A stretch of DNA of 64,000 bases. It comes from Paraphysomonas bandaiensis (Eukaryota; Protista; Chrysophyceae). Position 1 is the stretch's first letter, and each line of letters starts with the position of its first letter. Below the pieces are notes generated by a model. The model worked only from the letters and a program-made list of their open reading frames with translations, was not told where the DNA came from and made no database searches. Below are positions 38,085-59,037 of the stretch, piece after piece. Location: positions 160,701 to 224,700 of the forward strand of contig CBFFRP010000143.1 of NCBI GenBank assembly GCA_965644295.1, in the 5' to 3' direction. A program made the translations under genes and the position numbers.

Positions 38085-39490
38085 ATTAATGGAATGGAGT
38101 GATACGATGCATTTAGATGTATACTTTAATATCCATGATGCAGTCCAGTGGTCCACTCTATGCATGCATCACTATATATCTATATAAACAGCAGCGTATC
38201 GGCATCCTGTGTATATTTTTGTTCACATAAGCCTCTAATATTGAGAGAACAATTATGTGTATTATAGCCGTAGTTGTATGTAAGTAATATAGAGTATATT
38301 TGATTCAATTAATTACCGAAAACTAAGATGCTGACTGCCGACACGAGTACAGCTACGCATGTCCTGAGAGACGTATACCTGATATACAGCAGAGTAATAC
38401 AGTAAGATATAAGATACAAGGATCATGTCTCGTTGCTGCTGTATACCGTATATACTGCTGTATACAGTGACCTCTTAACACCCACATACAGTATGACCAG
38501 AAGATCCCAATGCAGCTCCATCCGTCACTCTCAAGCACAGGGATGCGGGATGCCGCCTACAGAAAGATCGCCTACTCCGCATTGACCCCTCTGCAATACA
38601 ACCACACATGATACTATGTTTCTCTGGCAATATCGAGATATCGGCTCCGCTTGACTTACCCTGAATATGTTACTGGTTTAGGAGTTAAGTGTAATTCTGT
38701 CAAATGTACTACCTGATTTTGCCATGGTTATGGATACTATCCCAAGCGACGCAGTGGGCAAACATTGAGCTCTATTTCTGACAGATACACACAGAGAGAA
38801 GGCCGCACGAACACTTGAAAAGTTGACAGTATAACATACCTATTAGTATCTGGATGATGTCATAAACAGATGTGAAATCTCTTCGAGTTATATAGTTCAT
38901 GGATTATTTTCGGGAAGGGTAATCGTGAATGGACTTTACGTTTTGTGTGTTTTGGTTCAGTAATAAAAGTAAGGGTCTATATCTTTTCTTTCAAAATTCG
39001 TTTTGTCACACAGAACTGACGAACTTATTTCACTAAAATTCTGGTGTGCGTAATCGTATCGCACATGCGTATACTCTTGTAGCGTTGTAATACTCGATAT
39101 ACTTGCTCTACATCGCTTCTGCAAGACCCTACTCTAAAAAAGACCAATACGTATAACTGATAATGCCGTCATCTTACAATACCAGCATACTCATTACATA
39201 TTACGCATGCACCTCCTCTGCTATATTTATTAAGCATGTTGGCAAGAATTTTCTTAAACCAGTTATTTTTTCTTTAGAAAACAATTCACTTCTTGTTATC
39301 GGAATGCTGTAACATTACATTGAGCTTCCTATCTAGTCTTGCCGGCTAACTACAGTTAGTTCTTCACATTGGAATCACTACAACAACACATGTGTTCATA
39401 AATCGAAATGCTTCAACTCCACCCCATAATAATATCACAACGCCCAGAAACCTATCTAGTAGTCAATATATTAAACGTGCTGTTATCCAA

Positions 39491-41815
39491 CTATTTCTCT
39501 CCCAGTTTTCTTAGGGGTTTCCCAAATGAATTCCAGTTCGGACGAGCACCCTTTACACAAAATATGGTCATTCAAATAAACACACACACTAGGTATTTTA
39601 CCTCTTCTCCCATCTCCGCTCTGATTTGATCTAACTTCTTAGAAAGTGAATCCATCTTGGGCAAGTGGTGGGGTCTGGCAACTGCAAGCCGAGAAACTAG
39701 TGGCGGTGTTTCTCCTTTAGCTGATGACTGAACTGAAGATCCACCCTTAACATCACTTCCACCTTTTTCTGACGCTGTACATTCTGACAGAGAATTCGAC
39801 CGTGGTACGTCAACTGATGACCCTTTGATTGAGGCCTTTTGAGACTGTCTTTGTTTCCCCTCCGCGATATCATATTCATCGTCAAAAACTGTACCCGCGT
39901 CCTCGACGTGATCTGTAAAGGAGTGAGAATTTCGCGTAAGTGCTGCTTTTGCTCCTGCGGGTGTGGAAAGCTCATCTTTGGTAGCAGGCGAATCCTCTGG
40001 ATTGATCTGCTCAGATGTACTCTCAGTTGCCCCCGTTTCAATTACCCTCTTGGCCTCAGCAAGGCGGGCCGCTCGGTCACGGAACTCCTGTTCCAGAGCC
40101 GCCACAGTTTGCCAAATGGTAACACGACGTAAAGAAGGCCAATTGTCAATGCCATCAGGATAAGACTGAAGCTGGTACCCTCGTCCCTTAGCAGACACAT
40201 CCGGAAAACGGGAGTCGAGTAGGGGGTTTTCCTCACCACCGTCCACCACCGATACATAGATCACTTTCTGCAGCATAATACGGTCATGAGATACCACACG
40301 ATATTTATTGTCACAACATCACACATTAAAACACTCTGACAGACTACATATCAAATATAATATGTTCGACATACCTGGAAAACAATCGTAATAGTGATGA
40401 TCCCAGATGGGTGGTAGCATTTCGATGCAATCAGTTCCATTCGCTTAAGCGCCCTACAATTCAAAAGATTCAATACCATATCTAATATTATTATGATAAC
40501 AGTGCAATTGCAATATAAAACATGCACGAAGCAGCTTAATACAACGGTAGATACATAGTAAGCTCTCATACCTTTCCATTTCTGGTGTTGGAGCGAGTCG
40601 AAACTCAAAAAAAGAGTTGGTTGAGTCACCCTCTAACCACTTTGTCACAGATTCACCCAGCCCCATTCTACTCAATCTGTCTATGAGTGCACGCAAAGTT
40701 TCTTCTGACTTGTATATTTCTTCTTCAATAAAAGGCGTGAGGGAGTGGATCAGCTCCATAGGTTTTGTGAAGTAGGAAGCATTTGGCATACGGTTAACGT
40801 CACAAAAGTAGTTCAAACGGCTCTGCTGCATACGGAGTGCAGGTATGACATATGGCACATCAGTGAGATTAATAACAGGGGTCAATTGCACTCGACCAGT
40901 GTAGCACCAGCTACCAAAACGAAAGAGTGCCTCGTGGTGAACGGAGAGCGTGCCGGTGTCATGATTTGGCTCACTTTTCATAATGCAGTACGTTTGAATA
41001 TACTTATCACTTGATAAGTTGGATGTGCTCAGTTTGGGAATATCTCGATCAATGTCGACGCCACCGTTTACTTTAGCCGTTAGAGTATGCCAGAGCGTTA
41101 GTTTTTTCCAAAACGACAAGTTCTCTGGATAGCTCGCGATATGCAGACCTTGTCCGTGGCTGGATACATTAGGGAATCGCACATCCAATAAGTGCTGGTC
41201 ACCTTCACCAGCCTGGAGAACAAAGTATAGTACTCCTTCAAAGTAAATAGCAATTATAATCAGGCCACGAGAGTATGTTTTGCTCGCTACAAGGGATACT
41301 TTTTTCATGAAAGGGGGAGGGTCCATTGTCAATTCAAAATAAGTGGATGCGTTATCATCATCAATCCACGAGAAGACAGACGACCACTTGTTTAACTCAC
41401 GGTCGACATGTTCGGAAGTGATTTCCTTTGCAATGAACTCACATGCATCAGAGACAAAGTCAAGGGGATTCGACACATCAGGATGAACAGATATACTACA
41501 AATAGTTGTGTTACGGAACATCTGTATATTCAATGACATCGCCTACCTGCTAGTATTACAATAGTAGCGAAGAGATCCCTGTTGCCGCTGTAGCGTTGGT
41601 ATGATGATGGGAAGATCAGCTGTACCTATAGTTGTTCCAGAGAAATCTATTGGGCCTTTATAGCACCAATTCCCGCATCGAAAAAATACTTCATTCATAT
41701 TAAAGGCATCTTTTTCATCCTGCTCAGGAGAGGGATAAATAACATACGTTTGATTATATCCCTCGCGCATGGAAACAGCCGTAGCACTGGGCACCTCCTT
41801 CGCGTCTCCGCTCAT
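39491..41815 (-). CDS. Unknown protein with a duplicated ~200-aa domain and a low-complexity tail
   Basis: Same-strand ORFs joined by short GT-AG introns; two homologous halves (see findings); last exon GARPNWNSFGKPLRKLGEK*. Confidence 0.75.
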
Positions 41816-42280
41816 AGTGAAAGCTCTCTGTTATTTATATTATGTAAGACTGAAACCTAATTGATATGATTTTAATGCATATCGCTATCTAATACATCAA
41901 CAGAGATATCAACCCTGCCTCTTATTGGCACCCAAGTTATGGATATATAGTTGTATCAGGGTCGTGGAGCTCCGCCTTAATTTAAACAGCCAGAATTCCG
42001 TCCGAATTCTCGTTTTAACATCCGCATGTACGTATACAGCACAGCAGTATGCGTATGCTGCTGTATATATAGCTGTGTACTACTGCATAGATACATACGT
42101 ACCTATACAGAGATGTTAAGGGACTGAGCTGTTCGGATATCCGGGGTACGGTACGATATACAGGACTACAGCTATATATACCGTATACCCCACACTGGCG
42201 TGCCAAGACTGCTTGGAGTGCTGTCAGCTGCAGGTGTATGTAGACGGCACAGATCTGCAGAGGAATCTCCTCTCATCTCA

Positions 42281-45200
42281 ATGAAAGAATGCATCTTTAT
42301 GGCCCATTGCACTGTTATCATGCTGCTGGTGCTGCTGGCCTGTGCAGCTGCGATGAAACAGTCCGAATGGAGTCCTCGTCCGGCCTATGCAGAGTCCACG
42401 TGGAGTATATCGCTTAGTTTAGATGATACAGCCACTGTATGTGAACCGATTGGTCTTCTTCACTCTGTCAATGTTTCTTCTGTTAGTGTTGATGTTAGGA
42501 ATGCACTCACTAATGAAAGTTATGGTGGCGATCGTATTTTAAAGTTTGTTCGAATCTCACCACCCGGCGACCATGATGTAGAGAGTGCAGTTTGTCTTGA
42601 AGTTGAAGGTTCAAAGGATGAATCTTTTTCTGAATACTGTGGTACTGTTTATTCTCTTTCTGCATGGGATGTGGTCAGACATTTTATTGATATTGAAGGC
42701 CACTGGAGCGTATGTTTTAAACTTGCAAATGAGTTTGTTGTGTATGCTATGCCACGACAACATCATTTCTCATATAATCATTCTGGTCAGTATGTGTTTA
42801 CGAATTCCGTTAATGTAACTAGCTTTATCACTGTTACTTCCCTCTTGGAGTGGGATGAGCCAGCCCCCAACAATGGCAAAGATATATTAATTCAGCTTGA
42901 GTATGCGGCTACCCCTGTGGTAGTGGTAGTAGACTCTGTATTGGACTCTCTCCCCGATGCCTCGCTTTGTAGCCCTAACGGTAGTGCCACGAGTGGGTCG
43001 TGTACTCTTCGATCGGCGATGGCGTACTGTATCTCGATTTCTTCCACATCAGAGAAATGCATCATTACAATGCCCTCGGATGAGACAATCTTTCTCAACG
43101 ACACTCTTGGTGAGTTGGAAATAGAAGATGTCACCGTCGGTATTACGTTAGAGGGCAATGGTTGCACTCTATCTACCAAATCAGCAGAGCGGAATTCGGT
43201 TAGAATGCTCAGGGCTCTAGTATCCACTTCTCATGTTCTTCACTTGGCCCTGAAAAACTTGAATGTAGAGCAATTCGGAGATGGATCGACAGATGGAGGT
43301 GCGATATATCTCGAAGGGGTTACATCAGTTCGTTTTGATAATGTATCATTTGTACAAAACTGGGGGCTGCAAGGTGGATCAATATATGCGACAGATTGCA
43401 GCAACGTTAGTATCACAGACAGTCACTTTATGATGTCGAAGGCCGAAGGCGATGGCGGTGCAATATATGTTGATGAATACTGTGATGATTGGAGTATCAC
43501 CAACACATTGTTTATCAGTAATAACGCCTCTACTGGAAATGGTGGAGCTGTGTGCTCTAACTCCCATAACAACTACATGTGTTTCAGTGGCTGTGTCTTT
43601 ACTGGTAATGAAGCAAGTTATGGCGGTGGTGTGTCATTTGAATATCTATCAAATGACATCGATATATTGAATACTTCGTTTTCAGATAATGTGGGCACAG
43701 AAGGTTCTAGTATATATCTGAATAATATCATCGACACTGTTTCAATCGACAATTGTAGTTTTGTTGGGGACCTTGCCCAGATTGGTGTTCTGAGTGTTAC
43801 TTCTTCGTGCTCTGACGTGTGGATAACAAATAGTGTGTTCCGAGATAATATTGCGACTTCCTTTAGTGTCATTGTTCTTTCGATTAGTAATGATCACATT
43901 TATATGGAAGGCTTACTATTCGAATCAAACATTGTATATCAAGGGGCAGTGGGAATTCTCTACAGTAATTCGTATGTAACTATAACGCGCTGTGAATTTA
44001 GAGACAACACCGGTTTAATAGGTTCCGCCCTATATGTCATGACGGGAAACTTTGATTACACTGTTGAAGATACCACTTTTACTAGGAACAGTTGTCAGGG
44101 CTCTGGCGCTGTATATGTAGCTGATACTAATACTTATAATTCATTTCGAAACTGTACGTGGACAGATAATGTAGCCGTCTCTGGGGCAGGTGGAGGTCTT
44201 TTATTTGGAGCGATGAATAATTTTCTCTCCATAGAAGATTGCAGATTTTATAATAACTCTGCGGATACTAATGGGGGAGCATTGGCTATACTTGACCAGC
44301 ACTATGACATCAGCCTATTGAATTGTACTTTTGAAGCGAACAATGCTGGACTCTACGGTGGCAATGTCTATATTTCGCAAATGAATAATGCTATTAGAAT
44401 TGAGAAATGTGGTATGAGCAGCGGAACTGCAGCATATGGAGGAGGAATTCGATTTGAATACAGTAATTCCATGATTAACATGATGGATTGCATGTTTCAG
44501 CATAATGCTGGTATGGAACACTCAGCGTTGTCTTTGGGTAAACTGAATACCCAGGTTAAGATTACAAATTGCAATTTTGTAAACAACTCTGCTTTGATTT
44601 CTGGTTCGGGTGGTGCCATTGGTGCCACAGAGAGTAATGCATTTGTTGAGATTCATGACTGTCAGTTCATTAAAAATATGGCACCTCTCCATGGTAGGAA
44701 GTCTTCGACCTATACTCATAGGATTAGTCATTGATAATGTTTTTTAGGCGGCGCTATAGTGCTCTCGAAAAGCAACACATATATTAGCTTGCGGAGATCC
44801 TTATTCGAGGCAAACGAAGCAGCTTACAATGGGGGAGCTATTTTTATGGACGGCAACAATTACTATATCGAGGTATCACATTGCACCTTTACCAGAAACA
44901 TCGCGACCTATGACGGTGGAGCAGTGCATGTCGCGTACCATGGTGTTCAAATATACTTTGATTTTTCAGTGTTCTTGTTTAACAAAGCTATGAATGGAGC
45001 AGGGATCTGTATCAATAGTCAAAACATTGACGTTTTTGTTGAGAATAGTGTCTTTTTTACAAACGTAGTTAGTGATAAAGGTGGAGCTGTATTTATTAAA
45101 GATAGCAATATCCGAGTATTTCTATTCAATAACTCGATTGAGTTTAATTCAGCCCTCTACGGTGGTGGTATTTCCATGCGCAGTGGAAATCAAATGACAA

Positions 45201-54799: not shown

Positions 54800-55880
54800 A
54801 TAACGTTCATAGAGAACTTTTCCTTCACATACAAGAACGAAAGCAGCTTTCGTAGCATTATATAGTAGGATATGAGAATGTACAAGATAGATACAGGTAG
54901 ACGCCTATCTAGCTTGACTAGTTCCTTATCCAGTTACTAATCTGGTGCTGATTCTCAACGCTTATTGCCAATAATAAGACTTTCATATCACGGTGTTACT
55001 TTTCGATCTGATACACAAACGCATGTGTGCAATTGAGGTATCCGTAAAGCATTGTTCCAACGAATGAATGACAAGTAACGTGTGAAGATGTTGGTTGTAA
55101 CTCCATATAGTTAACTAAATGTGTTGTATAGTGCACCACTTCTCGCGTATGCAATCTGAACTGTATCTCTGTGTATGCATCACTTCTACTCTGCATTTTC
55201 AGCTCTTCGCTGGAATGTTTTTATGTATGTGTAAACTAGAGGCTGTCGCTTCCATTATCACACTAATTCTCTTCATTGTGATACCAGAATTGAGTTTTTG
55301 TTACAGTGGCTTGTAAGAGTCTTTCGTGCTGAGCCTTCCAGGATACGCCACCATACCATGGCACACTGACTCACTCACCGCTGCAGATATGTAGATATCG
55401 CTCATCATGCTGCTAGGTAGAGATACAGCAACATCCTCTATGAGATAACTGTCCGTCCGCCCGTTAACGGCCAGGGATGGAAAAACGGGCTACCGTTGTT
55501 GGAGGGAATTTTATGTACAGAGCAGCACGAGGAGCACACCGACACCTACGACATCATGTACTGCTGTATATACCATATATCTACTGCTGTATACAATATA
55601 TGGTGCCTACAGTATGGGCTTGTGTGGAAGATTGTTTGATATGATGGTATTCTATTCTGATTCTCGTACACTGTACTCATCCAGTGACTTCCACTCCTCA
55701 CATCACTCATCGCATACAGACACTTCATTCGAAAGAAGTGTTTATATTTCGCTGCGTATGACTGTATAGTACAGTGACTGACGTATCAGTGTAGTCGTAT
55801 AGTATCATATCGTGTAGTATCGTATAGCTTGATAGGGACCTACAAGTCCATTACATAACCACCCCCATCATCCTCCCGGT

Positions 55881-57768
55881 ATGTCGGATCCGGCTATTCA
55901 AACAGAGGCTGAAGTTAAAGGTCGCTTCAAAGTGAAGCATGTAGGGCCTGTTGATGTCAACACACGTCTGTCTCATCTCTTATATGTCCCGCATATCTCC
56001 AGGTGAAGCCCACAGGGGATGAGGCTGATCACAAGACTGCTCCTACAGGTGGAGGTGTTGAGTCAGGCGGCGATATGATATCATCTACTGTTCAATCATC
56101 AGCAACAGCAGCAGCATCAGCAGTGAAGCATATCGACGCAGCTGCGACACAGGAATCAGAAATAATCGGACGATTTAAGGTCAAGCATGTAAGTTATTCC
56201 TTCCCGCTTCCATACCATACATCTCTGATACTGGAGCAGGTGAAGCAGAGCGATGATACTGCGGGCGGAAATGAAGTTAAAAATAAAGCTGCTGTGGAGA
56301 ATAGCAGTAGTACTGGGACGGCGAATTCCGGGGTAGAAATACTTAACCCACAGAGCGAAGATGGAAAGGTATCAGGCCCAGTTACTAGCGGAACAGTTGC
56401 CAAAAAGAGTAGATTCACCGTATTATCTGGAGGATCTGGCAGTCCTTCTAAGCATCTACCACCCTCTTCGAATGATGCAGGCCCGACTCCCACTATAGTA
56501 AGAGTGGGAAGTGGAGGTACTAAGCCTCAAGTTGCTGTTGCGGACGAGAAAACAGCATCTGAAGTCCCCGCCGCTCCAACTAGCACAACTAAGGCACCGG
56601 GCAGGAAGAGCAAGAGTCGTTTCACTGTGAAAACTATTCCCATTGAGGTGAATAGTTACAATGTGTGATGTAAGCATGACATTGTGGTATCGCAGGACGA
56701 CAAAGAAACCTCCGACCACACAAATCAGAGCTCCGCTGGTACCTGCGTTGTATTTCTTCCGTATTTTTTAACTATTCTTCCTGCATAGGTGTAACTTGTC
56801 CCTCTCCCACACTGCGACCTCTTCCTACTACTCGAAGGCATACTTCACAAGGATTGGAAAGCACCCCTGGTGATACAGACTCCCCGCTAGGCCTTCAACT
56901 GCTTTCTCTGCAGCAGCAGGGGGGTGCGGGGCGTCTACAGCAGCTTCTTGAAAGTAATTATCACATCCTTGCAAGTATCCAGAGCGCTCTCGCCACTTCC
57001 AGTGATGCTCGCCCTCGCCCTTCTTCCGCTATGCAGCAACCAGTTCATCAGCAGCAACCATCTCGGCCGCCTGCAACCCAACAGACTGGTGGTGTAGGAT
57101 TCAAGCCCATTGAATGTCACACCGCGGGCAACAGTGAAGCACCACCACCGGACGCCCTGCATACCACACGCCCCCCTTCTATTAGTACCAACAGCAGTCG
57201 AGAAAAGGACAAGCCCTTTGGCAACATGCTGCACCATTTGAATGAAATGAAGAAAGAGGTAGACGAGGCTGCACATGCAGGAGAAATACATCAAATGGAA
57301 AAGCGAATGTTGAGGGTAAAATGCGCAAAATTGGAGGAGAAATTGCAGTTCGAGCGCAACGTAAGAGCATCTTTGGAAGAGCGGTTGGAGAAAGCTTTGC
57401 AAACTCAGAGGCAGTTACAACAGCAGGTCGACGCCTTGCTTCACCAGCAGCAGCACGGAATGCACCACGAACAGCAACAGGCTTGCCCGATACTGCAAGG
57501 TGGTTCCGACCACCTGCCTGTCCCTACAACCGGTATAGGAGCAGGAGACACACGGAACCGGCAGAGTGGGTCTTGTTTACAGGAAATGGAAAATGCTGCG
57601 CTCTGTAGTATAGGCTCCCCATCTGTTGCTTCCTCATTAGGAATTGGACAGTCAGTCAGAAGCAATGGAAGTGATGACTTCGACTCTTTTTTTGCCTCTC
57701 GCGGCGTGTGGCCGGAGAGTGAACAGACTTTGAATTTGAATCACAATGGCAGTGTTGGTGGGACTTAA
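55881..57768 (+). CDS. Disordered, Q-rich coiled-coil protein with four RFxV motifs
   Basis: MSDPAIQTEAEVKGRFKVKH|intron|VK.., IIGRFKVKH|intron|VK, KSRFTVLS, KSRFTVKT; heptad-rich LNEMKKEV..LQQQVDALL in the last exon. Confidence 0.8.
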
Positions 57769-59037
57769 ATATCCTTCTCAAACCAGACATATTAGAGATA
57801 GAGCTTGCGTGCTTGTTGTGTGCAGTGTGGTGGTAGTAATTCGTAATGCTGAAGTTGAGTATTGCAATTCGAAATATGTTGCTGGGTGTTGAATCTGGAT
57901 TGGACATATTTAATTTGAGCGAGTGGGTTAATAAAAAACTTGTGCTTTCAACCTCTGTTTTTGTCCTACCCTATATCGTAAGAGATGCGGTTCGCATGTT
58001 CTGCCTGGGACAGTAGATTCGGATACCTCTCCACCTTGTCGGTCCAAGACTCACATTCCTAGCGTTCTCAACAACCCCAAAACTTTGGTCTCCCTCTCAA
58101 AACCCGATTATCCAACTATTCACAAATTGCAGGCAGATCTAACCTTACTGTAGTCTTAGCTCCTCATCTTGAAACTGCGCTGTATTTAGTATCTGGTACA
58201 CTGGTATATGTCCTTTAATTGCTGAAACCCGAATATATCAATGCTATTAAACATGCCTTATCTCATTTGGTGTGTTAATATCTTTTTCAACTGTTCAGTG
58301 AATACTTTCTCCTTCTGAATTCTTGTGACCTTATGTGCCACGGATTTGACTTGCCCTTGTCCGCTTGGTTTATTCTGATACCAGGCAAGTTGTCAAGTTA
58401 CACTTTCTGTAAAAGAAATTCCATTTAAAGTTAGGGTAGTTTAGATGTTGCGCAATCGTTACTTCAAGTCCTAAGCTTACAACAATAGGATTTACGTATT
58501 GTGTATAGTGTATAGTATTCTGATGGTATCGTTTGCGATGTCAAACTATGACTCGATTAAAAGAGTCATAAAATTCCCATGCAAATATATAAAACGTAGA
58601 CATAGATATCATTATGATGTTTACTGTTATTCATGTAGTGTTGGGTGTAGGGTATACATTCAGTTCCCATATCGAAGTTAGGTCCAAAGACTAAAGACAA
58701 TAAGGCTTCATTACAAACGCACAATGAATAATGACAGGACAATAGGAGTGTGCATACTATAAGTGAAATTCCTGTGATGTACCATGACTTCTATTATGTA
58801 TTAGTTATGGTTCTGTCGGTAAGTTTTAGGGAATATGTAACCAGCGTAACCTCTTTAACTGGTGCTGTAAAGTGTAAAGGCATCGGTTGCTACATACGAA
58901 TTACAAATGCCTTTTCAGTATAGGTGCACACCAACACTCTATTTCACTATCGTAAACTTAACTATAAACTTCTAGTAAGTATATTGGTTCCAAAAGATAA
59001 ATATCTCTATACAATGAGAGCTGCAAATGACTCTACA

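Follow-up and report, generated by a model that had tools for sequence, protein, structure and literature searches.

Gene organization and RFxV motifs

The window analyzed in this study is a stretch of 64,000 nucleotides (nt) of the chrysophyte Paraphysomonas bandaiensis, a free-living marine flagellate (assembly GCA_965644295.1, contig CBFFRP010000143.1, forward strand, positions 160,701 to 224,700). Positions 55881-57768 (+) of the window coincide exactly with the coding region of a gene of five exons, which runs from an ATG at 55881 to a TAA stop codon at 57766-57768, and the encoded protein carries four RFxV motifs. A sequence-only reading of this interval had reported GRFKV twice and SRFTV twice, and this is indeed what the translation contains. 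The two motifs of type A read GRFKV and are located on the forward strand at 55920..55934 (motif 1, extended form GRFKVKHV) and 56168..56182 (motif 2). The two motifs of type B read SRFTV and follow on the same strand at 56408..56422 (motif 3, preceded by KK) and 56615..56629 (motif 4). The extended form of motif 4, SRFTVKTIP, is the most widely conserved form in the protein family described below. The type A motifs were assigned from the translation and a shuffle test, motif 3 from the translation, and motif 4 from the translation and the family comparison.

The protein contains ten phenylalanines, four of which are found within RFx[VI]. By composition, 0.042 such motifs are expected per protein (Poisson probability of four or more ~1e-7), and none of 20,000 shuffles reached four motifs. 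These numbers should be read with the note that the motifs come as two internally duplicated pairs (GRFKVKH and SRFTV) and do not count as four independent events. Exons 1 and 2 both end with GRFKVKH followed by GT, and in both cases the next exon begins with VK (55920-56005 and 56168-56245). The two exons look like a tandem duplication, which is shared with the closest orthologue (L015, see below) and predates the split from its species. The motif peptides have a net charge of +3 to +4.

The exon model was drawn by eye from the sequence and the per-exon translations and then compared with public transcript contigs. According to these contigs the mRNA spans 55669..57951 (+), with X1 covering 55669-57927 and X3 covering 55673-57951, which leaves a 5' untranslated region of ~212 nt and a 3' untranslated region of ~180 nt. 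The coding part of exon 1 (55881..55940, +; 20 amino acids, aa) ends with GRFKVKH and is followed by a 62-nt intron with GT..AG borders (joint 55940>56003). Exon 2 (56003..56188, +; 62 aa) has the same ending and precedes a 51-nt intron (joint 56188>56240). Exon 3 (56240..56647, +; 136 aa) encodes a disordered region rich in S, T, G, A and K that contains both SRFTV motifs. The short exon 4 (56696..56738, +; 43 nt) ends in phase 1, with joints 56645/7>56694/6 and 56737/8>56788/9, and exon 5 (56789..57768, +) runs to the TAA stop, as assigned from the translation, the transcript contigs and a protein match. The introns of the gene are 62, 51, 48 and 50 nt long. All four are supported by transcript contigs, two of which are full-length (2048 and 2071 nt) and show the same GT..AG borders, and three of the four exon joints are also supported by polyA metatranscriptome contigs. 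One low-depth metatranscriptome contig (X5) differs from the genome near its end, reading CTA (Leu) for the genomic CGA (Arg) of motif 2 at 56171-56173 and CAG for CAT two codons further on. Both mismatches probably represent an end-of-contig error or a strain variant.

The spliced product has 558 aa and is near-identical to a database protein of 557 aa (P0001), which was found using exon 5 as query. P0001 originates from MMETSP1103 with taxon id 36769, corresponding to the genus Paraphysomonas (chrysophyte, Stramenopiles). It has one Ser fewer and one A>V exchange compared to the window product, and the transcript of its strain shows the same differences. P0001 was used as a stand-in for the whole product in the protein-level analyses, and the exons were searched one by one. 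The gene family is single-copy in this genome.

Predicted architecture of the protein

No Pfam domain was detected in any exon (Pfam, E<=1), where only sub-threshold coiled-coil noise appeared. In an AlphaFold2 model of P0001 built with 29 family sequences, no secondary structure is predicted outside two helices (residues 279-299 and 374-462), and the predicted local distance difference test score (pLDDT) remains below 50 there, including residues 1-278. The RFxV motifs are thus located in predicted disorder. The second, long helix (57214..57480, +) comprises 89 residues with a pLDDT of 97-98 and holds the family-defining core. Its heptad register is continuous, with strong hydrophobic residues at 50% of the a/d positions versus 26% overall, and Q-rich stretches are present on both sides. 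Judging from this model, the long helix likely dimerizes as a coiled coil. The disorder, the Q-rich segments and the coiled coil that had been described from the letters alone are hence all found.

Two further conserved elements were recognized in the family alignment. The first, a short amphipathic helix matching LxQLLExNxQ[IV]L (56929..56991, +; residues 279-299 of P0001, pLDDT ~70), is positioned after the RFxV motifs and before the coiled coil, and is found in most full-length relatives. Near the C-terminus, an acidic-aromatic motif, D-[DE]-F-D-x-F-[IF]-A-S-R-G..W (57673..57711, +), is common to many family members and likely represents, from its conservation in the alignment, a second short linear motif.

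A new protein family with a conserved motif

An exhaustive HMMER search against 1.84 billion cluster representatives yielded 32 relatives at E<0.001. The resulting alignments define a new protein family of 33 clusters, which are unnamed and contain no Pfam domain. All 32 relatives align to residues ~355-450 with the consensus ~EKDKsFGK..HY.NEMKKEL...LE.QRLREKCQQLE..L....LEERLEK (alignment A2). Many of them also have the short LxQLLExNxQ[IV]L helix and the C-terminal acidic-aromatic motif. When the full-length alignment (A3) was used as query, only P0001 was retrieved, since low-complexity words swamped the candidates.

Among the relatives with a complete N-terminus, P0017 and P0025 contain one RFx[VI] motif, and P0021, P0026 and P0039 contain two. 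The sequence around the motifs is strikingly similar in these proteins, as in KKGRFKITNIP, KKGRFKVTNIP, KKSRFTVKTIV and KKTRFTVKKIP. For the remaining relatives, the gene predictions on metagenome contigs start at an internal Met, and six of these were read upstream on their contigs. The upstream exons encode four motifs in L015 and two each in L013, L016, L017, L018 and L019. L015 is the closest orthologue of the window gene, having the same exon layout and each motif subtype twice.

The motif [KR][KR][GST]-R-F-x-[VI]-[KT]-x-[VI] is thus found, in one to four copies, in each of the 12 members whose N-terminus could be read. The 24 motif instances of these 12 proteins have R and F without exception; V or I follows at +2, G, S or T stands at -2, and no Pro is present at +1 or +3. 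Two subtypes can be distinguished, type A near the N-terminus with the form KK[GS]RFKV[KT][NH]V, and type B with the form KK[GST]RF[TIV]VK[TA][IV][PS] followed by acidic residues. When the N-terminal region of the window protein is compared with that of L015, 19 of the 20 motif columns are identical versus 80 of the 316 other columns (25%). Such a contrast in the pairwise alignment is what characterizes a functional short linear motif within disordered sequence. Conservation in orthologues above background, which the sequence-only reading had put forward as a check, is therefore observed.

This conservation bears directly on the explanation that the motifs are a functionless by-product of low complexity or of recent internal duplication. 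The raw count of four does overstate independence, given the duplicated GRFKVKH and SRFTV pairs. However, the shuffles never produced four motifs, and the motif is kept in all 12 readable family members, whose coiled-coil cores are only 26-46% identical to that of the window protein and whose flanks are not conserved. Because the motifs are conserved in other species, they are not products of chance, and the conservation data leave this explanation refuted for practical purposes.

We also searched the whole genome with the DNA pattern KK-x-RF-x-[VIM]-[KTN], which misses the window gene's own motifs (first/last codons differ) and hence provides no census of ligands; it gave 49 matches versus 21 for the reversed control, and about 15 of the 49 belong to one dispersed repeat. 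The four best-looking matches are located in open frames of 29-62 aa without gene context and were taken as chance. A 23-nt word, AAGAAGGAGAGATTTCAGATGAC (which reads KKERFQMT), is identical on at least 15 contigs (e.g., C65:5126-5148, C70:39157-39179 and C113:39925-39947) and presumably belongs to a dispersed repeat or a mobile element.

A WNK-derived pseudokinase in the same genome

Animal CCT domains take up RFxV/I motifs by beta-strand addition, with the Arg contacting acidic residues and the Phe inserted in a hydrophobic pocket (PMC12413468). A six-frame search of the Paraphysomonas genome with PF12202 (OSR1_C) gave two sub-threshold matches, on contigs C248 and C514. The latter was rejected as an ordinary coiled-coil protein. 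The former belongs to a predicted protein of ~1100 aa encoded on the minus strand (G000:C248 ~38600-42400; L002:5586-9361), identified by the PF12202 match and a kinase alignment. Its layout consists of a kinase domain, a long linker, a CCT-like domain at L002:7072-7380 (minus strand), ~250 residues downstream of the kinase domain, and then ~500 residues with a disordered tail and a coiled coil.

In the PDB, the kinase domain is closest to WNK3 and WNK1, the exon of the N-lobe giving an E-value of 1e-8. In one exon, alignment with WNK3 shows HRN..T..S for HRD..K..N and GMW for DLG. The protein has lost the catalytic aspartates as well as the Lys and the Asn of the catalytic loop, and it keeps the glycine-loop Lys of WNKs and contains no beta3 Lys. 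For the CCT-like segment, all ten nearest Atlas clusters are OSR1_C, NRBP-like or WNK-CCTL2 (score 0.90; 196-197/256 features). From sequence evidence alone, on which the domain call also rests, we classify this protein as a WNK-derived pseudokinase carrying a CCT-like domain. Instead of an NRBP orthologue, it may represent a WNK paralogue that degenerated independently.

Active WNK kinases and their CCT-like domain

Searching with the N-lobe of the pseudokinase led to two active WNK genes, on contigs C120 (L011) and C69 (L012), which correspond to the MMETSP proteins P0050 (948 aa) and P0051 (931 aa), respectively. A C-lobe match on contig C627 was rejected as a MAP2K-like kinase without a CCT domain. 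P0050 matches WNK3 with an E-value of 5e-76, the next kinase family following at 6e-32. In both proteins HRD and DLG are intact, the glycine-loop Lys is present (GAYK), and VAWN is found at beta3, i.e., without the beta3 Lys. By these sequence hallmarks P0050 and P0051 are bona fide active WNKs. Neither of them contains an RFx[VI] motif itself. Long microsatellites of the (TACATACA)n type, reading YIHTYIHT... or CMYVCMYV... in translation, are located upstream of the WNK-like genes and on contig C514 (L002:9440-9900, L008:2200-2580, L004:2440-2740) and represent a common simple repeat in this genome.

A highly conserved domain of ~90 residues follows the kinase domain at a distance of ~250 aa in P0050, P0051 and seven metagenomic homologues; in P0050 it covers residues ~566-660. 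A profile combining this domain with the CCT-like segment of the pseudokinase (A4) was run against all PDB sequences. The matches were WNK1 CCT1 (E 0.0032), WNK2 CCT1 (0.0038), WNK1 CCTL2 (0.016) and WNK3 CCT1 (0.023), further followed by one unrelated uncharacterized protein (0.31) and the CCT domain of OSR1 (~1). The invariant F-x-F-D/N..D....E-M of the CCT-like domains aligns to IEFSFDLERD..QEM of WNK1 and is also invariant in the pseudokinase.

In the AlphaFold2 model of the WNK domain, pLDDT reaches 75-84 in the core, and the elements follow the order strand-strand-strand-helix-helix, which conforms to the CCT fold with its three- or four-stranded sheet lying against two helices. The top six Foldseek matches of this model, 5g3q (two chains), 2lru, 6fbk, 5o2c and 6elm, are all CCT domains of WNK, OSR1 or SPAK, and 6fbk is the CCT-like 1 domain of WNK2 with a bound RFXV peptide. 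Likewise, the top seven VIA-align matches are all CCT structures, in the order WNK1 CCTL2, WNK3 CCT1, WNK2 CCT1, OSR1, SPAK, OSR1 (a second structure) and WNK2 CCT1 with peptide (Z 5.9-7.8, root mean square deviation 2.2-3.9 A, 71-84 residues). Sequence profile and predicted fold together support the assignment of this domain as CCT-like. Its core has a net charge of -12 over 63 residues.

With the CCT-like profile of this lineage, exactly three loci were found in the genome, namely the two WNKs and the pseudokinase, and none besides. CCT-domain proteins, for which a search had also been advised, are thus present in CCT-like form. The sequence-only reading had, however, named SPAK/OSR1 as a candidate partner, and this part is not supported: neither the six-frame PF12202 search nor the lineage profile revealed an OSR1/SPAK-type CCT kinase in the genome. 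For this reason, any CCT-type partner would be a WNK or the pseudokinase and not SPAK/OSR1. We should note that surveys based on Pfam would score such protist WNKs as having no CCT domain.

What the motifs may bind

The window gene is real and expressed, its motif is conserved, and the same genome encodes plausible receptors for this motif. We propose, from the sequence evidence, that the motifs dock into the CCT-like domains of this organism's WNK-family proteins, to which we assign a probability of roughly 0.55. The motif preferences reported for animal CCT domains are Gly, and also Ser, Thr, His or Asn, at position -2, with Pro being disfavored around the core (PMC12413468). The family motifs match these preferences, which supports docking to CCT-like domains, as do the net charges of the motif peptides (+3 to +4) and of the CCT-like core (-12). 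Several observations weigh against this proposal. The CCT-like segment of the pseudokinase remains below the cut-off of PF12202 (E 0.0027, 18.2 vs 22.4 bits), and the domain of the active WNKs remains below that of CCTL2_WNK, PF24889 (E 0.028, 14.7 vs 27 bits). Fold matches with a Z of 6-8 can come from common arrangements, so that the structural case rests on the CCT structures ranking at the top. Three of the four motifs of the window protein do not have the double Lys found in most relatives. In addition, K-K-x-R within the motif is compatible with a classical nuclear localization signal (NLS) of the monopartite pattern.

The latter point leads to the explanation that the motif serves in docking or targeting to a partner without a CCT domain, its likeness to RFxV being convergent in form only. 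An importin-alpha type NLS with a hydrophobic extension, a patch for membrane or nucleic-acid binding, and a ligand of a lineage-specific domain would all be candidates. The strongly basic character of the motif, with its NLS-like K-K-x-R, would suit them, and RFx[VI] is a short pattern. However, an NLS needs neither an invariant F, nor V/I, nor a small residue at -2, nor the absence of Pro, and all 24 instances keep every one of these features. The presence of acidic CCT-like domains with conserved groove residues in the same genome also argues against a non-CCT partner. We consider this explanation rather unlikely, although most of the probability not given to CCT docking falls to it.

According to a further explanation, the protein would be a true but very divergent TSC22D homologue, its core being derived from the TSC box/leucine zipper, and the NRBP-TSC22D-WNK module would date from an early eukaryotic ancestor. 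The order of the parts is the same (a disordered N-terminus with motifs, then a helix predicted to dimerize), the motif has a form between RFxV and the KKKSxFQITSV motif of TSC22D, and, like animals with their NRBP, the organism has a WNK-related pseudokinase carrying a CCT-like domain. The TSC box (PF01166) was found neither in the exons (E<=1) nor among the families reported for 30 family cores (E<=10). The family profile matched no TSC22 or GILZ chain in the PDB (E<=10), and the nearest Atlas clusters are unnamed. Moreover, the helix is ~90 residues long and central instead of a short C-terminal zipper, and the protein has extra conserved parts that TSC22D does not contain. Xiao et al. reported TSC22D and the TSC22D-binding region of NRBP only in Metazoa, having found no TSC22D even among the closest unicellular relatives of animals (choanoflagellates, filastereans and ichthyosporeans; bioRxiv 10.1101/2024.02.13.579840). 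Homology with TSC22D thus appears quite improbable.

Returning to docking on CCT-like domains, the gene product would act as a dimerizing, largely disordered adaptor. Its four basic-hydrophobic motifs would add as beta-strands to the acidic CCT-like domains of the two WNKs and the pseudokinase. Eight motifs would be available in a coiled-coil dimer, and with this doubled valency several WNK or pseudokinase molecules could be gathered, following the same logic by which animal TSC22D bridges NRBP pseudokinases and WNK kinases. Type A and type B motifs may each have their own CCT-like target domains, comparable to the motifs of TSC22D. Most economically, the family would be read as supplying the adaptor to a WNK-family module of chrysophytes and related protists, with a possible link to osmotic or volume signaling.

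A step further, a stramenopile module of three parts (WNK, CCT-like pseudokinase and disordered dimeric RFxV adaptor) might work like the crowding and volume sensor formed by WNK, NRBP and TSC22D in animals. This is a tentative analogy that we consider possible, with the odds leaning against it. If it holds, the design would be either much older than the Metazoa or invented twice. The WNK-NRBP-TSC22D assembly is the current model of how animal cells sense crowding and osmotic shrinkage and has been described as a metazoan invention. A chrysophyte with all three kinds of parts would change this metazoan-only picture, and CCT-motif docking would, if true, be a general eukaryotic wiring principle for WNK kinases. 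A simple unicellular system, with a single-copy adaptor, two WNKs and one pseudokinase, would then be available for multivalent motif-domain control of WNK. A full-text literature search found no paper on RFxV docking in stramenopiles or other protists.

Comparison with known systems

The closest parallel is found in the long isoforms of TSC22D (TSC22D1.1, TSC22D2, TSC22D4 and Bunched A of Drosophila). These are mostly disordered and dimerize via the C-terminal TSC22 domain; their RFRV motif binds WNK CCT1, RWTC binds the CCT domain of NRBP1, and KKKSxFQITSV binds WNK CCT2 (bioRxiv 10.64898/2026.04.15.718729; PMC12266122). The window protein shares with them a disordered N-terminus with conserved basic-hydrophobic motifs followed by a helix, and in both cases a WNK kinase and a WNK-related pseudokinase exist alongside. 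The KK upstream and the [KT]-x-[VI] downstream of the family motif resemble KKKSxFQITSV, giving it a form intermediate between the latter and canonical RFxV. The TSC22D motifs are known CCT binders, whereas binding and dimerization of the window protein are predicted from its motifs and the structural model. Unlike in TSC22D, the helix of ~90 residues is central and followed by a second disordered region and the acidic-aromatic C-terminal motif, all motifs belong to one RFx[VI] class with two subtypes, and the host is a stramenopile. From these sequence comparisons, the window protein is not a member of TSC22D but a probable functional analogue in its design. The TSC22D-like character assigned to it from the letters alone therefore stands for the multivalent, disordered coiled-coil design, but not for the TSC22 box.

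A second parallel concerns the RFxV/I (R-phi, beta-phi) motifs of WNK1/4, NKCC/KCC and other SPAK/OSR1 ligands, which are similar in their core, the residue at -2, the absence of Pro, disorder and conservation. In contrast to SPAK/OSR1 ligands, the receptor would here be a CCT-like domain of the WNK type. The pseudokinase, in turn, resembles NRBP1/2 (Madm). NRBP1 is a WNK-related pseudokinase without DFG, HRD and VAIK (PMC12266122), and it activates WNKs. The predicted chrysophyte protein likewise combines a WNK-related fold, the loss of the HRD and DFG/DLG aspartates, and a CCT-like domain in the C-terminal part, but differs from NRBP1/2 in its WNK-like layout and in having kept the glycine-loop Lys of the WNKs.

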